From NCBI GenBank assembly GCA_964270895.1, contig OZ185453.1: a stretch of 64,000 nucleotides of DNA. One strand, given 5' to 3'. How positions within the stretch are numbered: the first letter of the stretch is position 1; the number at the start of each line of letters is the position of its first letter. The position numbers were made by a program, and so were the translations under genes. Below are positions 55,766 through 64,000 of the stretch, in pieces. The notes below the pieces were generated by a model. It was not told where the DNA came from. It was given only the letters and a program-made list of their open reading frames with translations, and did no database searches. The stretch comes from Podarcis filfolensis (Eukaryota).

Positions 55766-55873
55766 GCAAGGCTTTTCATCTTAAACCAGCCACTTCTTGT
55801 TCCAATTATTTCAGCACGGTTTGCTGTTCTTAACAATAGCCAAAGTGAGGGAAGAATCCATATTGAGCGACCT

Positions 55874-56338
55874 GGACTTCCGGGTTAGCGCCATCACCTA
55901 ATGGCGGATTCCCTCCGAGCTCCGGAGGGAATCGGCTCAGTAGGGGATGGGTCCTGCCGCGGCGGCGACGCGGGGACCCTCAGAAACCACAGGCGCTGAA
56001 GCCTGTGGACCTGGTGACTCGGCGGGCACCATTTGCGCCCCCCCGACCCGCGAAGGAGCCTTTTTAAAGGCTTCGGAACGGGGGACGGGGAGCGGCACGG
56101 TGCTGTGAGTCGACTGCTTCCCCTACGGAGTGAAGCCGCGTGCCATGGTCGGAGAGCGCTGACTTCTTCCTTTGAACATTTGGACTAAAAGTAACAACCC
56201 GTGAGTAATATGGAAACTGGACTTAAAATTTCTCTTTTGGATTAGGCACGATCGGGGAAGGCGCAAAGAGGAAGTCCGTCTCCCCGCCTTGTAAACATTT
56301 TAAAGCAAGGACTAGATAACTAAGGTTGAGAGAACACC
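55874..56338 (+). mobile_element. 5' part of an L1-related non-autonomous element, interrupted by the full-length L1
   Basis: Starts GGACTTCCGG like the inner L1 and is colinear with its first ~330 nt (ACCACAGG..CCTGTGG, AGTGAAGCCGCGT, ACAACCCGTGAGTAA). Ends at the left TSD copy. Confidence 0.8.
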
Positions 56339-57387
56339 GGACTTCCGGAGGCGGCGCGACCGGTAATGGCTGCCTTCTCCGAGTAAGGAGAAGGGAGCTC
56401 CGCTGTAAACGGGTCGTCCGCTACGGCGAAGCGGAGACCCATTCAGGAAAACCACAGGTGGCAGAAGCCTGTGGTCTCGGGACCCGGCGGGCGCCAGAAG
56501 CAGCCCCCAAAACGCTGAAGGGACCCCGTAAGGGGCTCCGGATCGCGGAGGGGGTAGCGGCGCTGTGGGTCGTTGCGCAAACAGCGAAGTGAAGCCGCGT
56601 TGCTGTTGCCGGTCAGCGCTGTCCTTTCTTCCTGCAACTTTTCTGAACTTTGGAAACTACAACCCGTGAGTAAATTTGGACATTGAAAACTTTCTGAAAC
56701 TTTTGTCAACTTTCTGAAACTTTTTGAGAACTTTATGAAACTTTTAAAACTTTTTTAAAAAGTTGAAATCTGGCTGAAAACGGAGTGAGGATAAGCAGGA
56801 AGCCCATCTCCCGCTATACTGAACTTTAAGCAAAGAGCAGGAGGAGTGGAGACAAAAAGTTATGCGTTAACTAAATGCTGGCACCCTGTTAAAGCAGTTT
56901 TCTGAGTGAAAGACTTTGAGCTATTGACTTTTGCTGGTCATATTCGGGGTGCATTGATATCCTTCTTCTGTGGCACCAGTGGATTATAAAATAAATAAGA
57001 ATCTCTGGTGCTGGAGCTGCCTGGATGAGCACCAGTTTGCAACTTTGGATACATTGAATTCAGGTTTTGAAACATTCTGAGTTGGAACTGGATACTTTGA
57101 AACTGTTGCAGTCAAGGCACTGTAAGAAACACTGTTTTGCTTTAAGTTTTACTCTGCTAAAAATAATACATTGTGGAGGCGATAGACATGGATTTAAATT
57201 TATAAGTTTAACTTGGATTTGATCTTTTCCCTGAAGACGTATTAAGCTCCCTCTAGAGGATTTTGGACTTACAGCAGTGACTTTGTTTTACTTTCCCTTT
57301 CCCGGCCTCTGTTTGACTATTGTATCTGGGACTCTGCTTTCTCATGGGAACAACTTGGATTGACCTTGGATTACAGATAACTTTGGA

Positions 57388-58422
57388 ATGAGTGGCGCAA
57401 GGAGAAGAGGAAGGACTAAACAAACAACTCTAACTTTATCTGCAGCCTCACAGCGTAGATCTTCTGTGCCGGCCTTGCCTTCCACTTTGCCTCCAGACAT
57501 AGAGGCGGCCTCCCTAATACAGGCAGGGGAGGGTGAGACAGAGGAGCTGCACCTGGGAGATATGGCTTCAGGGACAAGTAGCTCTGTCTTGGAGAAAATT
57601 TTGGAGAAACTGGAGGCTCTGGACAAGAAGGCTGATTTGCATACAGCTAAAATTGAACAGAACACAGAAAGCTTGAATAAGCTGACTGGACAAGTTGCAC
57701 AGAATGCCCAGTCTATTGGAGAATTAAAGGAGGCTGTAGGTGAAAATCGTAAACTGGCTGAAGATACTAGTCAAAGATTGGAAGAACTTGAGAAAGAAGT
57801 AAGACCACTCAGCAAACAAGTTGGAGAACATCAGATTTACTTTTTGATGACAGAACTGCGAAACAGGGAGACCAACTTGAGGATACGGTCAATACCAGAG
57901 GTGGAAGAAGATAATTTTATTGAATTTCTAACTAAGGAATTTGCCAAGTTTTGGAAGTTAGAGGAAAAAGACTTTAAAATTGTATCTGCTTTCAGGCTTG
58001 GCAGAGTCAGAAGGACAGAGAAGCCCAGAGATTGTTTGATAACACTGAGATCAAAGGAGGAAAGGGACAAGATTTTGGGCCTGCACTACGAAAAGTCACT
58101 AGACATTTTGGGCAAGAGAATTGAAATCTACAAGGACATTCCTAAGCAGTTGCTGGACCTTAGATCTAACTACACGGAATTGGCAAGACTGTTGAGAAGC
58201 AACGCAATTATCTTCAGGTGGGAGTTTCCACAAGGATTATCCTTTACCTACAGAGGGAGAAAGATCAAAATCAAAACAGTGGAAGATAGAGACAAGTTTT
58301 TGGGAGCACACGGAGAAGACCTCCACAAAGGACTTGGATTGCCAGCGCCAGAACTTCCAGGGGAGCCCGCCCCCTCGGATCCTCAAGGACCGGAGAACAA
58401 GGTACCACCCCAGAAAGAATAA
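57388..58422 (+). CDS. L1 ORF1p (344 aa; coiled coil, RRM, CTD)
   Basis: Heptad-rich N-half, RRM start motif RETNLRIRSIPE, and C-terminal DIP...RWEFPQGLSF typical of vertebrate L1 ORF1. A 15-bp spacer precedes ORF2. Confidence 0.93.
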   Translation: MSGARRRGRTKQTTLTLSAASQRRSSVPALPSTLPPDIEAASLIQAGEGETEELHLGDMASGTSSSVLEKILEKLEALDKKADLHTAKIEQNTESLNKLTGQVAQNAQSIGELKEAVGENRKLAEDTSQRLEELEKEVRPLSKQVGEHQIYFLMTELRNRETNLRIRSIPEVEEDNFIEFLTKEFAKFWKLEEKDFKIVSAFRLGRVRRTEKPRDCLITLRSKEERDKILGLHYEKSLDILGKRIEIYKDIPKQLLDLRSNYTELARLLRSNAIIFRWEFPQGLSFTYRGRKIKIKTVEDRDKFLGAHGEDLHKGLGLPAPELPGEPAPSDPQGPENKVPPQKE

Positions 58423-58437
58423 CCAGACCTATCCAGG

Positions 58438-61400
58438 ATGTCTCTGCAGCTTTTGAGCTGGAACATAAATGGCTGTAACAGTCCCGAAAAAAGGTCTAAA
58501 ATTTTTCATATTTTAAAAAAGGAACAATTGGACATTATATGCTTACAAGAAACACATGTGATTAGGCTCCATAGAAAGGTGTTAATAAATAAAAGGCTTG
58601 GTCAAGAATTTATATCATCGGATACAGTTAAAAAGAGAGGTGTAGTGATCTATGCAAAAGAGAGCCTTTCACCAAAATTTCTCTTTAAAGATGAAAGTGG
58701 AAGAATCCTCGCAATAGAAGTACAGTATCAAGGAGAAAAAATTTTGATATTAGGAATTTATGCTCCAAATGAAGGAAAATCGGATTTTTATAAGAAGTTG
58801 CACGAGACCATGCTGGATTATCTGGATTACAACAACGTCATCATGATGGGGGACATGAACGGGGTCGTATCAACAAATATGGATAAGTCACAGAACCAGA
58901 ACATTACTAAAGAGGGAAGACTACCTAAGACCTTTTTTGAAATGACTGACAATATGGACTGGGTTGACATCTGGAGAGTTAGAAACCCCCTGGGAAGAGA
59001 AGGAACATTCTTTTCTGAAGCTCAACTGACTTGGACACGAATCGACCAAATATGGATAACTAGAAGTCTGGCACCTAAGGTGAGGAAGGTGGAAATCTGC
59101 CCCAAAACATGCTCCGACCATAACGCCTTGAGAATGGATATGACATTGATCCCAATCGGCTCCTTTAGATGGAAGATGAATGATGGCCTGTTTAGAGACC
59201 AAAGAATTGTAAAGAAGGCCCAAAAAACCTTAAAGGACTATTTTGAGATTAATTTGAACACTACGGTGGAAAAAAGAACTATCTGGGATGCAAGTAAAGC
59301 TGTGATGAGAGGGTTCTTGATTCAACAGAATTCCTTAAAGAAAAGACTGCAAAATGAAAAGAAAGATAAAATTCTGGAAAGTATCAAAGAGTTGGAGAAG
59401 AAGTTAAGATCTAACCCGAAGTCCCAACCGATTCTGAGAGAAATTAAACTTTATCAGGCGCAATATTCCAAGCTGATAAATCAGGAAATAGAATGGAAGA
59501 TTAAAACAATGAAACAAAAAACTTTTGAATCGGCAAATAAATGTGGGAAACTGCTAGCTTGGCAGTTGAAAAGGAGACAAAGATTAAATACAGTAACAAA
59601 CTTAGAGGTTGAAGGAAGGAACATTCAGAACCCGGGAGAGATTAGAAAGTGCTTCCAGAGGTATTTTAAAAAGTTATATACTCAAGGGCCACAAGATGAA
59701 ATAGAGATTACACAATTTTTGGAGAGAAATGGATTAGCAAAGCTGTCAGAAGAAAATAGAACAATTTTAAATGGCAAAATAACACGACAAGAGATTGAAC
59801 AGGCCATCCTGAGTCTGAAACAGGGCAAATCACCAGGGCCAGATGGACTGACCTCTAACTACTATAAGACATTGAAGGATTATTTGATACAACCTTTGTT
59901 GGAGGTCAGTAATGAAATAATGGAGGGGAAGAAGGCGCCTGAATCGTGGAAAGAAGCATTTATCACATTGATTCCAAAGTCAGAAACTGAAAAGACACAA
60001 CTCAAGAATTACCGTCCCATCTCCCTTTTAAATGTGGATTACAAAATATTTGCAGATGTTTTGGCACGAAGATTTAAGAAAGTTTTAAGTGAGATAATCC
60101 ATAAAGACCAGGCAGGCTTTCTCCCGGGCAGACATATGTTTACTAACACAAGGAACATCATAGACATATTGGAACTTTTACAAACAAACATAAACACTAA
60201 AGCAGTTTTAATTTTTATAGACGCGGAGAAAGCCTTTGACAACATATCTTGGAAATTTATGAAGGGGAATTTAAAAGAAATGGGAGTGGGACGGGGGTTT
60301 GAGAACGGGATTGAGGCAATATATTCAGAACAAAAGGCTAAACTGATAGTTAACAATGTGGTTACAGAAGAGTTTAAAATTGAAAAAGGTACACGACAAG
60401 GCTGCCCGATTTCCCCATTACTGTTTATTTCGGTTCTGGAAGTGCTCCTGAATATGATTAGGGGGGACCGGTTGGTGGAAGGGATTCAGGTCGGAGCGAA
60501 ACAATATAAACTTAAAGCTTTTGCAGATGACCTAGTTCTGACATTACAGGAGCCGGAGTCTAGTTTGAAAAGAGTACTACAACTGATTCAAAACTTTGGT
60601 CGAGTGGCAGGATTTAAGTTAAATAAGCAAAAAACTAAAGTTTTGGGGAAAAACGTGACAGATATTGAGTTGGAACAGCTTCAGAAAGAGACAGAACTAA
60701 ATGTGGTTAAAAAAGTTAAATACCTAGGGGTAAACATAACAGCAAAAAATCTGAGTTTATTTAAAGATAATTATGAAAAATGTTGGTCAGAGATTAAGAG
60801 AGACTTGGATAGCTGGTCAAGACTAAAACTTTCTTTGTTAGGCCGAATAGCTGCCATCAAGATGAATGTATTGCCAAAAATGTTATTTTTGTTTCAGACA
60901 CTGCAGATTGTAGACAAGACAGAGTGCTTCCGGAAGTGGCAGAAAGATATTTCTAAATTTGTCTGGCAGGGCAAAAAGCCCAGAATCAAATTTAAAATAT
61001 TAACAGATGCGAAAGAAAGAGGGGGCTTTGCCCTGCCAGATTTAAAGTTGTATTATGAAGCTGCAGCTTTCTGCTGGTTAAAAGATTGGTTACTTCTTGA
61101 AGATACGGATGTCTTGGATTTGGAAGGTTTTAATAATGCGTTTGGATGGCACGCATATTTATGGTATGATAAAGCTAAGATAAATAAGGCCTTCAAGAAC
61201 CATATTGTCAGAAAATCAGTTTTTAATGTCTGGACAAAATATAAAGACTTACTGGAGAATAAAACTCCGAGGTGGCTGTCACCCCTGGAGGCTAAGGCTC
61301 GGAAAAGAGCCAATATGGAGGCCAACTGGCCAAAATATTGGGAGATAATAGAAAAGGATGGTGACAACTGGAAATTGCAGAGTTTAGAAAAGATGAGAGA

Positions 61401-62178
61401 CAAAGTGCGAGACTGGTTACACTATGCTCAGATTAAAGAAGTGTTTAAAAATGACAAAAAGCTAGGATTCCAAGTGGAAAAGTCAAAGTTAGAAACTGAA
61501 CTGTTAGAACCTAAGACTAAGGTACTTTCAAGAATGTATAACTTGCTGCTGAAATGGAACACACATGACGAAATGGTAAAATCAACAATGATAAAATGGG
61601 CGCAGGATATTGGGTATAATATTATGTTTGAAGATTGGGAAAGGTTGTGGACCTCTGGGCTGAACTTCACTGCATGTAATGCGTTGAAGGAAAATGTGAT
61701 GAAAATGATGTATAGATGGTACATGACCCCTGTTAAACTGGCTAAAATATACCATTCGTCTGATAGCAAATGTTGGAAATGTAAGGAAAATGAAGGAACA
61801 TTTTTTCACCTCTGGTGGACCTGCCCTAGAGTGAAGGCCTTTTGGGAGAAGATATATAATGAATTAAAAAAGGTGTTTAAATACACCTTTACTAAGAAAT
61901 CAGAGGCCTTTCTCCTGGGTATTGTCGGCCAGAGTGTGTTAAAAAAGGACAGAACATTCTTTTTGTACGCAACAACAGCAGCAAGAATATTAATTGCCAA
62001 GAATTGGAAAACTCAGGAGCTACCCACTGTGGAAGAATGGCAGATGCAACTGATGGACTATATGCAATTAGCCGAGATGACCGGCAGAATTCGAGACCAG
62101 GGAGAAGAAAGGATGGAAGAAGACTGGAGGAAATTTAAGATTTATTTACAAAAATATTGTAATTTGGCTGAGTGCTGA
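58438..62178 (+). CDS. L1 ORF2p (1246 aa; APE endonuclease, reverse transcriptase, CCHC zinc knuckle)
   Basis: EN motifs SWNINGCN, LQETH, GDMN, SDH. RT motifs PGPDG, YRPISLLNVDYKIF, QAGFLPGR, DAEKAFD, GTRQGCPISPLLF, FADD, KYLG. C-terminal CWKC...FHLWWTC. Confidence 0.97.
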   Translation: MSLQLLSWNINGCNSPEKRSKIFHILKKEQLDIICLQETHVIRLHRKVLINKRLGQEFISSDTVKKRGVVIYAKESLSPKFLFKDESGRILAIEVQYQGEKILILGIYAPNEGKSDFYKKLHETMLDYLDYNNVIMMGDMNGVVSTNMDKSQNQNITKEGRLPKTFFEMTDNMDWVDIWRVRNPLGREGTFFSEAQLTWTRIDQIWITRSLAPKVRKVEICPKTCSDHNALRMDMTLIPIGSFRWKMNDGLFRDQRIVKKAQKTLKDYFEINLNTTVEKRTIWDASKAVMRGFLIQQNSLKKRLQNEKKDKILESIKELEKKLRSNPKSQPILREIKLYQAQYSKLINQEIEWKIKTMKQKTFESANKCGKLLAWQLKRRQRLNTVTNLEVEGRNIQNPGEIRKCFQRYFKKLYTQGPQDEIEITQFLERNGLAKLSEENRTILNGKITRQEIEQAILSLKQGKSPGPDGLTSNYYKTLKDYLIQPLLEVSNEIMEGKKAPESWKEAFITLIPKSETEKTQLKNYRPISLLNVDYKIFADVLARRFKKVLSEIIHKDQAGFLPGRHMFTNTRNIIDILELLQTNINTKAVLIFIDAEKAFDNISWKFMKGNLKEMGVGRGFENGIEAIYSEQKAKLIVNNVVTEEFKIEKGTRQGCPISPLLFISVLEVLLNMIRGDRLVEGIQVGAKQYKLKAFADDLVLTLQEPESSLKRVLQLIQNFGRVAGFKLNKQKTKVLGKNVTDIELEQLQKETELNVVKKVKYLGVNITAKNLSLFKDNYEKCWSEIKRDLDSWSRLKLSLLGRIAAIKMNVLPKMLFLFQTLQIVDKTECFRKWQKDISKFVWQGKKPRIKFKILTDAKERGGFALPDLKLYYEAAAFCWLKDWLLLEDTDVLDLEGFNNAFGWHAYLWYDKAKINKAFKNHIVRKSVFNVWTKYKDLLENKTPRWLSPLEAKARKRANMEANWPKYWEIIEKDGDNWKLQSLEKMRDKVRDWLHYAQIKEVFKNDKKLGFQVEKSKLETELLEPKTKVLSRMYNLLLKWNTHDEMVKSTMIKWAQDIGYNIMFEDWERLWTSGLNFTACNALKENVMKMMYRWYMTPVKLAKIYHSSDSKCWKCKENEGTFFHLWWTCPRVKAFWEKIYNELKKVFKYTFTKKSEAFLLGIVGQSVLKKDRTFFLYATTAARILIAKNWKTQELPTVEEWQMQLMDYMQLAEMTGRIRDQGEERMEEDWRKFKIYLQKYCNLAEC

Positions 62179-62453
62179 ATTGGATGCCAGTGCAGACAAT
62201 TGTCTACCATTAAATTAGATTTAAGGCTGAATTATATGTCAAACCAAATTAAGATTATTAATTAAGATGAGTTAAATGATAATTTGTTTGAAATTAATTT
62301 AATAATGATGTAAGTGTATGCGGGAGGTGTGGGGGAGTCCCATGTAACAATTGAGAGATGTTAAATGGACAATGATAAGTGGTGCTTATCTAATATATGC
62401 TTTATTTGAAAACTTCAATAAATATATTATAAAAAAAAAAAAGAGAGAACACC

Positions 62454-63931
62454 TTCTTCTTTAGTGGATAAAAGCAATTAATTTCACGTTTTGGCAGTAT
62501 AAGCGATTTTGCTGGAGGATAAGAGTTAACTTTGAGAGTGGAACTGTCACCCCTCCCCCCAGGACCCGGGAGCGATCCGTGAGAGAGCCTGTTGAAGAGA
62601 CATAGAAGATTTTGACAGCTGTCAAACTAGCTGTCAAAGCTGGGGGAAAAAGAGAGAACTTTGTTTCTGTTGTCTTTGCTGGTTATATTTGTTACATTCA
62701 GGTAATAAATTGTTGAAAACAAAGAGAAAAAGCTAATTTGACTTTTGGATTGGAACTGGAAGGAATACTAAGTAACCAGAACTCCTCTAGAGGGGGTTCT
62801 GGGACATTACAAGAATGGCTGCAAGTGGAAAAATACTGACTGAACTGGAGAGGGTTTTCTTTCTCTTGGGAAAGTTACAAGAACAGAGTAATGTTTTGGA
62901 TACAAATGTCACAACATTGAATGAAACAGTAAATAAACTTACTGAATCTGGAAGGGACTTGACTCAAGTCTTTGCATCTGAACAAAAAGTTTTTGTAGCT
63001 GAACTAAAAATCTTTGCAGCTGAACAAGAAAAGAAATCTGAGAAATTTGAGAAAGTGGGGAAAGAGATATATGATGATTTGGAGGGAAAGGAAGGAGGAG
63101 CTACAATGCCGCAGATGATTAAGGAGAGCCAGAGGCCTGTTAAGATGGATATAAAGGAAAATAAGAACGGGATCATGAAAATCTGGTTTGAATTGAAGAA
63201 TGAGGAATGGAGAGATCTCCTCATGTGGAGATCTGAAGACCTATGGATTACAAAATTGACTAAAGTGGAAGCTGGAGTTTTTGGGACATTTGGACTTAAA
63301 AGAAGTAAGAAACAAGATTTGGGCTACACTTTTAAATATGGAGGTCTGGCTGGAAGAAACATGGACCTTATTGGGACAGAGCTTCTCCGAGATTTGGTGT
63401 CCAATACAAAGGACTATCAAAAAAACCGGCAGAGAGGAATTGAGAGAGAATTAAGAGCCTCGGACGTGAGGTCACCAGGCTGACAGCAGATAGACTGATG
63501 GACATTTGTTGGGGAACCGGGAAACCGGGAAAGGCGGGGAGTGGGGCTTTGGGAATCCAAAGGGTGTACAATTATATTTTGTTTCTTTGTATTCTGTTTT
63601 GCTACTTATATAAAAATGGGGAATTCGTGAAAGGGAATTGGGGTCGACCTTAGAAAAAGATATTAAGAATAAGTACTGACGTATAAAGACTGAGGTTTAT
63701 GTTAAAATTGGTTAACTAAAATGAATTAAATATAATAAGGTAAAATTTGGGGATAAGAACTTGCTGAACTAAAAATTGAACTGGAATACAAGAAGGGGAG
63801 GTGTGGGGAAGTCAGGGAAATATGTTATTGAAAGTAAGGAATGCAAATTCTATGTGTGTGCGTTTTTTTTTAACTTTTCTTTTGTTTTTTCTCTATTTTT
63901 TGAAAATTCCAATAAATATCTTTTAAAAAAA
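62454..63931 (+). mobile_element. 3' part of the L1-related non-autonomous element (rest of 5' UTR, one ORF, 3' UTR, poly-A signal, short A tail)
   Basis: Resumes after the right TSD copy. The 3' end (GGGAGGTGTGGGGAAGTC at 63796-63813, TTGAAAATTCCAATAAATAT, A7) mirrors the inner L1 3' end. No ORF2 motifs are visible and no flanking TSD was found. Confidence 0.7.
62815..63483 (+). CDS. 222-aa ORF1-like coiled-coil protein of the non-autonomous element (no recognisable RRM/CTD)
   Basis: ATG-initiated open frame. LERVFFLLGKLQEQSNVLDTNVTTLNETVNKLT aligns without gaps to inner ORF1p LEKILEKLEALDKKADLHTAKIEQNTESLNKLT (9/33 identical, hydrophobic positions mostly conserved). Confidence 0.6.
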   Translation: MAASGKILTELERVFFLLGKLQEQSNVLDTNVTTLNETVNKLTESGRDLTQVFASEQKVFVAELKIFAAEQEKKSEKFEKVGKEIYDDLEGKEGGATMPQMIKESQRPVKMDIKENKNGIMKIWFELKNEEWRDLLMWRSEDLWITKLTKVEAGVFGTFGLKRSKKQDLGYTFKYGGLAGRNMDLIGTELLRDLVSNTKDYQKNRQRGIERELRASDVRSPG

Positions 63932-64000
63932 TAATAATACAACATTCTAAAATCATTTCATTAAAAAATTAATTCAAATCAAATTGATGGCAACCATTGG

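Follow-up and report, generated by a model that had tools for sequence, protein, structure and literature searches.

An ORF2-less, L1-derived retroposon family of lizards, resembling the half-L1 elements of mammals, one copy of which is interrupted in Podarcis filfolensis by an intact L1

The closest described counterparts of the element reported here are the HAL1 (half-L1) elements of mammals, derivatives of L1 that lack ORF2 (Smit 1999; Bao and Jurka 2010; both cited in PMC5753468 and PMC4161310). HAL1 elements are described as having arisen repeatedly within mammals (PMC5753468). A second mammalian system of relevance is L1TD1, a domesticated host gene that is derived from the L1 ORF1 protein (ORF1p) (PMC4161310). 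In the literature searched, which comprised one paper collection, HAL1 is described only from mammals, and nothing on similar elements of squamates was encountered.

The retroposon family described here occurs in lizards and resembles HAL1 in being non-autonomous and multi-copy, with L1-type ends, no ORF2 and a single ORF that appears to descend from ORF1; for both, mobilisation by L1 in trans is presumed. It differs from HAL1 in its hosts and in the nature of its ORF, the product of which falls short of a complete ORF1p, has only the coiled coil as a recognisable part and carries a new conserved C-terminal motif. Judged from its host and its divergence, the lizard family probably had an independent origin, and its presumed L1 partners are lizard L1s. 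It shares with SVA, Alu and other L1-dependent retroposons an A tail and, presumably, the dependence on ORF2p supplied in trans, but those elements have neither an ORF1-derived gene nor an L1 5' UTR. L1TD1 and, apparently, the lizard ORF are derived from ORF1p, have both kept a coiled coil and both evolve fast, yet L1TD1 is a single-copy host gene, whereas the lizard ORF is found in thousands of retroposon copies.

The copy analysed lies near the end of the window, the whole 64,000-nucleotide stretch of P. filfolensis DNA under study, and is interrupted by an L1; the rest of the window contains no further copy of the outer family or of L1. A sequence-only reading had proposed that an intact L1 and one copy of its target-site duplication (TSD) occupy 56339-62453, and that their removal restores a unit of about 1.94 kb with L1-type ends, one 222-aa ORF, an AATAAA signal, an A tail and no endonuclease or reverse transcriptase (EN/RT). 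This description was confirmed and its coordinates are correct; the excision joins 55874-56338 to 62454-63931 to give a unit of 1,943 bp. The features are as follows, with L001 to L010 denoting relatives of the outer unit.

55874..56338, + strand: 5' part of the outer element, an L1-type 5' UTR that opens with the same GGACTTCCGG as the inner L1 (about 63% in alignment; also in L004 and L009)
56328..56338, + strand: first TSD copy of the inner L1, GAGAGAACACC, which is also outer-element sequence (present once in L001 and L004)
56339..62442, + strand: inner L1, intact, 6,104 bp with its A12 tail (ORFs, TSD, Pfam)
57388..58422, + strand: ORF1 of the inner L1, 344 aa, a type II ORF1p (open; profile of relatives)
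58438..62178, + strand: ORF2 of the inner L1, 1246 aa, endonuclease and reverse transcriptase (Pfam)
62443..62453, + strand: second TSD copy of the inner L1, GAGAGAACACC, 11 bp, a perfect match to the first
62454..62814, + strand: rest of the outer 5' UTR, up to the ATG (collinear in L001, L004 and L009)
62815..63483, + strand: outer ORF, 222 aa, with an N-terminal coiled coil, a variable middle and a conserved C-terminal motif
62966..63027, + strand: three copies of a 21-bp unit inside the outer ORF (Tandem Repeats Finder, protein alignments)
63484..63931, + strand: outer 3' UTR, which contains the GGAGGTGTGGGG motif (alignable to that of L002, L005, L006 and L010)

The inner element bears the full set of L1 features, namely ORF1 and ORF2, an APE-type endonuclease, a reverse transcriptase, a poly(A) tail and a TSD. 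Its first letters, at 56339, are GGACTTCCGG, and it closes with AATAAA and A12 at 62442. Its ORF2 matches the Pfam families Exo_endo_phos (PF03372, 1e-13) and RVT_1 (PF00078, 4e-38), and a profile built from relatives of its ORF1p, some of which are named in Podarcis, matches the solved structure of mouse L1 ORF1p, chain 2ldy_A (E 6e-4). Public contigs also contain an ORF1p (P0012) that is 99% identical to that of the inner L1.

Both untranslated ends of the outer unit, the 5' UTR and the 3' terminus, are L1-derived. Its first 350 nt align with the 5' UTR of the inner L1 at about 63% column identity, the first 10 nt being identical, although this homology is visible only by global alignment; when the two elements were compared by tblastx and blastn, nothing beyond the 3'-terminal 37 nt was returned. 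Over these 37 nt the outer unit and the 3' terminus of the inner L1 show 86% identity; the poly(A) signal AATAAA occupies 63911-63916 and the A run 63925-63931, and the G-rich GGAGGTGTGGGG in the 3' UTR is a further likeness to lizard L1. The outer unit differs from lizard L1 in having no endonuclease or reverse transcriptase, no remnant of which was detected by tblastn with ORF2p, and in the length of its ORF, 222 aa against the 344 aa of ORF1. No TSD for the outer copy was found in the earlier reading or in a renewed search, where the best candidate, 8 nt with one mismatch and lying 50 nt away, was at chance level. Because no TSD was found for the outer copy and no fetched relative contains both ends, the hallmarks of retrotransposition observed in this family are only its A tails and its differing 3' flanks.

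Logan contigs were mapped on 62101-64000, a range that takes in the 3' part of the element, with the 5' end at 55874 lying outside it; 4,635 contigs came from X1 and 3,237 from X5, which represent two coded organisms, and every bin of the outer part within the range was covered. The stretch is present in runs of six organisms from nine studies. None of the runs containing the outer element is on record as RNA, run X15 being RNA by guess only, and because all runs are Logan contigs, their depth does not give a copy number and RNA ends are unreadable. A HMMER search with the 222-aa ORF yielded 11 protein clusters of 129-215 aa, six of them at E<=1e-10 and all of them made up of Logan members, whereas a word-index protein search with the same query gave no match, so that the full HMMER search was needed. 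Relatives fetched through this protein are about 64-78% identical to the outer unit at the DNA level. L004 and L009 cover the outer 5' part at 73-78% identity, and L009, which is 1,865 bp long and encodes an ORF of 215 aa, follows outer positions 26-1698, almost the whole unit, collinearly. The two outer halves belong to one element, since L001, L004 and L009 run without a break through the point at which the L1 is inserted. L005, L006 and L010 share the AATAAA..A(n) terminus with the window copy, which makes four different 3' flanks in all, and the single run ERR14654793 yielded three diverged subfamilies whose ORFs are open. As far as assembled contigs can show it, the family is dispersed and in high copy in several organisms, with thousands of contigs in two of them and copies that lie at different genomic places and share a common 3' end.

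Internally deleted L1 copies are common, and the outer unit might be one of them, arising once or recurrently, or might belong to a family whose true members are autonomous, with a small ORF1 followed by ORF2. Also in favour of such a reading, the relatives inspected number only about a dozen, all of them under 1.9 kb. In every relative that extends beyond the stop of the ORF (L002, L005, L006, L009 and L010), however, the shared 3' UTR begins at one and the same place, across lineages that have diverged by 22-40%; the 11 protein clusters consist of short proteins, none of which was found joined to an ORF2 or ahead of one. No trace of EN/RT was detected anywhere by tblastn, which covered the outer unit and L001-L008, and L009 and L010, judged by their collinearity, show none either. 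The absence of ORF2 thus characterises the whole family rather than a single copy, and judged by these alignments it goes back to the ancestor of lineages that differ by about 25-45% in DNA. Deletion from an ordinary L1 is a very unlikely explanation. The proposal of a non-autonomous squamate family is supported by the copies, the relatives and their shared ORF2-less layout: the unit is not single-copy, its halves are not unrelated, and the loss of ORF2 is not a local deletion. The further suggestion that the inner L1 lineage may prefer the outer family as its target, with a site specificity like that of some Tx1-group elements, finds no support and is very unlikely. The outer element has just upstream of it a flank (TTGAGCGACCT) with some likeness to the target of the inner L1 (TTGAGAGAACACC), a loose resemblance that is probably due to chance and was set aside as a target motif. 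The nesting is a single case here; L001, L004 and L009 carry no insertion at the site, and in organism B a contig near-identical to the 3' end of the inner L1 continues past the A tail (62442) into a different, unrelated flank. The endonuclease of ORF2p is of the APE type, and the insertion site TT/GAGAGA fits the loose, TT/AAAA-like preference of the L1 endonuclease, so that it is an ordinary site for an enzyme of this kind.

A third alternative accepts a real, L1-mobilised family but regards the 222-aa ORF as a decaying relic, with only the ends of the RNA mattering. We consider this unlikely, even though several observations are in its favour. The median dN/dS over the whole ORF (pairwise Nei-Gojobori estimates) is 0.55 in frame, only modestly below the 0.72 and 0.78 obtained in shifted frames; the central part of the protein can barely be aligned, and lengths range from 171 to 222 aa; and open ORFs are selected for among the relatives, as these were found through a protein library. 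The ORF has no match in Pfam or the ESM Atlas, nor does the family profile in the PDB, and the AlphaFold model (10 sequences; mean pLDDT 51.8) is confident only for a helix at residues 2-93 and poor beyond it. Against it, start and stop stand at the same positions in nine lineages separated by dS of 0.6 to above 1. The ORF and its protein relatives have in common the start MAAxGK and the end RASDVRxPG. Over the first 25 codons dN/dS falls to 0.26 and over the last 35 to 0.34, with dS of about 0.9-1.2, and the UTRs of the outer element contain no ORF comparable to that of 222 aa. Because dN/dS is this low at the ends while synonymous sites are near saturation, a constraint on the protein rather than on the RNA is suggested, and on these estimates the reading frame has been maintained, with purifying selection acting on its two ends.

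The relationship of this protein to ORF1p is recognisable mainly in the coiled coil. Comparison of the family profile with a lizard ORF1p profile gave an hhalign probability of 77% (E 2e-5), with a collinear match that is largely coiled coil; blastp and hmmsearch returned weak collinear matches to many ORF1p, and the 222-aa ORF is about 28% identical to the inner ORF1p over the coiled coil only. The homology is thus weak and lies mostly in a region where composition can mimic it. The RRM and C-terminal domain of ORF1p are unrecognisable in the 222-aa ORF, and the family profile has no match in the PDB, whereas the ORF1p profile does find 2ldy_A. The label ORF1-only claims too much for this ORF, in which the coiled coil alone is clearly ORF1p-like. 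Within the ORF, the 21-bp triplication lengthens the protein by about 13 residues (roughly two heptads), which distant relatives lack. By these comparisons, the product is a fast-evolving small coiled-coil protein.

Taken together, the outer 1,943-bp unit is probably a full-length copy of a non-autonomous, L1-derived lizard retroposon family, and the inner element a later, recent and ordinary L1 insertion that came to be nested in it by chance. The family has kept the L1-type 5' UTR, presumably as an internal promoter, along with a small ORF, the L1-type 3' terminus, the poly(A) signal and the A tail, and has no endonuclease or reverse transcriptase. The ORF appears to be a much reduced descendant of L1 ORF1 that preserves the coiled coil, whose RNA-binding core can no longer be recognised and which seems to have gained a conserved basic motif at its C-terminus. 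Such an element would be transcribed from its own 5' UTR, and its polyadenylated RNA would be copied into DNA at nicked targets by the ORF2p that co-resident L1 lineages provide in trans. The particular lineage of the inner L1 is not the sole possible partner, since its 3' UTR is missing from the contigs of organism C, where the outer family is abundant. The small protein may assist in this; the likeliest ways are that it coats its own RNA or that the coiled coil lets it join assemblies of ORF1p. A bolder and quite tentative possibility is that it is no mere relic but an adaptor, a coiled coil with a conserved basic tail, which either enters the trimers or condensates of resident ORF1p or replaces ORF1p on its own RNA. 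If so, it would bring the parasite RNA to ORF2p and defeat the cis preference of L1, heptad-sized expansions such as the 21-bp triplication would track the coiled coil of the partner in an arms race, and the family would represent a protein-based parasitism of L1 that evolved outside mammals.

The outer family is HAL1-like and, in reptiles, corresponds to the half-L1 parasites of mammals. It appears to be independent, abundant and long-lived, with several diverged subfamilies that carry open ORFs in one sample, and in its ORF, ORF1 seems to have been pared down to a coiled coil and a new, conserved tail, with selection acting on both ends. In squamate repeat libraries, such units would be annotated as truncated or deleted L1s unless the family is recognised. 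The family may serve as a natural minimal system for studying the part that ORF1p-like proteins play when elements are mobilised in trans, and it bears on the question of why parasites of L1 retain any ORF1.

The stretch at 55874-63931 consists of two nested elements, an intact L1 inserted within an outer unit, whose features are as follows:

56339-62442, plus strand: inner L1, which starts with GGACTTCCGG and ends with AATAAA and an A12 tail
57388-58422, plus strand: inner L1 ORF1, 344 aa
58438-62178, plus strand: inner L1 ORF2, 1246 aa, with Pfam domains Exo_endo_phos (1e-13) and RVT_1 (4e-38)
56328-56338 and 62443-62453, plus strand: perfect 11-bp target-site duplication of the inner L1, GAGAGAACACC
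62815-63483, plus strand: sole ORF of the outer unit, 222 aa
63911-63916, plus strand: AATAAA of the outer unit, followed by a short A run

Excision of 56339-62453 yields one unit of 1,943 bp, as the sequence-only reading had proposed. The first 350 nt of this unit share ~63% column identity with the inner L1 5' UTR, including the same first 10 nt, where the homology begins, and over its last 37 nt the identity with the L1 3' terminus is 86%. A GGAGGTGTGGGG motif is found in the 3' UTRs of both, and the search for ORF2 (tblastn, L1 ORF2p as query) returned no match in the outer unit. On sequence grounds, the outer unit is thus a single element of L1 descent. Its 5' end at 55874 is set solely by identity with the L1 start, and no target-site duplication was found for it; the best candidate, 8 nt long with a single mismatch and lying 50 nt past the tail, is at chance level. 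The other family members likewise showed no such duplication. The G-rich form of the shared motif, GGAGGTGTGGGG(A/G)AGTC (63765-63828 and 62322-62342), recurs in the 3' UTR of the L1, of the outer unit and of the related contigs L002, L005, L006 and L011, and in DNA runs X1 and X5 summed depth peaks in the bin that contains it.

Parts of 62454-63931 are present in runs of six organisms from nine studies, none of which is on record as RNA. At ≥80% likeness, 4,635 contigs in run X1 and 3,237 in run X5 align to 62101-64000 and cover all bins of the outer part, counts that, being of Logan contigs, represent many distinct variants and not copy number. A word-index protein search with the 222-aa ORF returned no match; a full HMMER search recovered 11 clusters (129-215 aa; E≤1e-10 for six), from which the contigs examined as relatives (L001-L013) were taken. 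Where they align, these contigs match the outer unit DNA at 72-78% identity, and over the whole ORF identity drops to 54-72%. L009 (1,865 bp) aligns collinearly with outer positions 26-1698, from the 5' UTR through the spacer and a 215-aa ORF into the 3' UTR, and L001 and L004 run uninterrupted across the inner L1 insertion point. None of the eight contigs L001-L008 retains a trace of ORF2, and in L002, L005, L006 and L010 the common 3' UTR begins directly after the ORF stop; L005, L006 and L010 also share the AATAAA..A(n) terminus of the window copy, beyond which the flank is different and unrelated in each. Run ERR14654793 alone holds three diverged subfamilies with open ORFs. A single-copy unit, two halves from unrelated elements and a local deletion of ORF2 had each been named as findings that would overturn the proposal of a family; the thousands of contigs and 11 protein clusters, the relatives spanning the junction, and the ORF2-less contigs, respectively, argue against them. 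By comparison of these copies, the outer unit belongs to a family in which the ORF2-less state is ancestral.

The 222-aa ORF is likely a descendant of ORF1 in which the coiled coil persists, an RNA-binding core can no longer be recognized and a conserved basic tail has been added. In pairwise comparison, the protein aligns with the inner ORF1p over the coiled coil only (28% over 87 aa, E 0.009), and blastp and hmmsearch give many collinear but weak matches between the family protein and ORF1p. Comparison by hhalign of the family profile with a profile of 17 lizard ORF1p is collinear with a probability of 77% (E 2e-5); in it the starting MAA of the family falls on an internal MAS of ORF1p, its GTFGLKR on the invariant AFRLGR and its Y..LA..RN on Y.DLV.LLR.N. 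The lizard ORF1p profile matches the solved mouse ORF1p chain 2ldy_A (E 6e-4), and the outer-family protein profile matched none of the solved chains. AlphaFold (10-sequence alignment) predicts a single long helix over residues 2-93 (block pLDDT 54-86), with low confidence past residue 93. Because composition alone can make coiled coils match, descent from ORF1 is likely, short of proven. Within the ORF of the window copy's subfamily, a 21-bp unit is repeated three times at 62966-63027, adding ~13 residues, or roughly two heptads, that lengthen the predicted coiled coil; the distant relatives P0001-P0011 are without these extra residues, and contigs of sampled organisms A and C have the full length.

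The relatives have a common start, MAAxGK..LxGxLQ(E/D), and a common end, LLRDL..KDYQQNRxRGTERDLRASDVRxPG-stop, flanking a middle that is variable and uneven in length. Start and stop positions are identical in nine lineages, a sample in which open frames are selected for by origin from a protein library. The median pairwise Nei-Gojobori dN/dS is 0.55 in frame versus 0.72 and 0.78 in shifted frames (the same 36 pairs, nucleotide alignment), falling to 0.26 in the first 25 codons and 0.34 in the last 35, with dS at ~0.9-1.2, which indicates that the ends are conserved as protein and not as RNA. Among contigs on 62101-64000, supported variant sites in the ORF are split 4:8:7 among first, second and third codon positions, a pattern without third-position excess that agrees with a fast-evolving protein.

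HAL1 is described as a non-autonomous L1 derivative that encodes ORF1p only and has had several origins in mammals (PMC5753468, citing Smit 1999, Bao and Jurka 2010; PMC4161310). The outer family would work alike and fits the structural definition, but its ORF falls short of a complete ORF1p; the earlier half-L1-like reading holds for the HAL1 structure without ORF2 (tblastn, L001-L008), and only partly for the ORF, which resembles ORF1p in its coiled coil. No report of HAL1-like elements in squamates was found in the literature searched, and novelty is claimed within that literature only.

The inner L1 ORF1p has a 99% identical copy among public contigs, and its nearest named relatives are Podarcis proteins at 38-56% identity, which marks the host as a lizard. 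Two Podarcis muralis proteins annotated as TRIM39-like E3 ligases (P0029 and P0030, with RING and B-box Pfam domains) share 53% identity across 58% of ORF1p, which points to a TRIM-ORF1 fusion or else to an artefactual gene model covering an L1. ORF1 and ORF2 lie in one frame, with only a single TAA followed by five sense codons between ORF1 and the ATG of ORF2 (58420-58440; QKE*PDLSRMSLQ), and the 5' UTR carries ~3.5 copies of a 20-bp tandem unit (56683-56754) that is missing from the outer unit 5' UTR.

L1 endonucleases have a loose preference for TT|AAAA-type targets, with which the insertion site of the inner L1, TT|GAGAGA, is compatible. A specific preference for the outer element had also been suggested; the nesting is a single case, the relatives are without an insertion at this site, and a contig of organism B nearly identical to the L1 3' end continues into unrelated flank after the A tail, so the nesting is read as chance. 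The flanks upstream of the two elements are loosely alike (55863-55873 versus 56326-56338; TTGAGCGACCT versus TTGAGAGAACACC), probably by chance.

Outer-family elements are abundant and dispersed to different loci, with the architecture described here, a common 3' terminus bearing A tails and a maintained ORF. Their transcription would start from the retained L1-type 5' UTR. Both elements open with GGACTTCCGG (56339-56348 and 55874-55883), at whose extreme 5' end the shared terminal GG-ACTTCCGG contains what we take to be a canonical ETS-type core, CCGGAAGT, on the opposite strand; a conserved TAATGGC(G) ~25 nt further on presumably resembles a YY1-type core, and the two motifs may serve as the internal promoter signal in lizard L1s. 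The RNA would be polyadenylated at the conserved AATAAA and undergo target-primed reverse transcription by ORF2p of co-resident L1s. Over the inner L1 3' UTR (62165-62356), summed depth is very high in organism A; organism B has a single near-identical contig there, and organism C, where the outer family is abundant, has none at ≥80% likeness. This 3' UTR is therefore of far narrower occurrence than the outer family, which could have drivers other than the inner L1 lineage. The small protein would help this process by acting in cis on the RNA that encodes it, or together with L1 ORF1p through the coiled coil.
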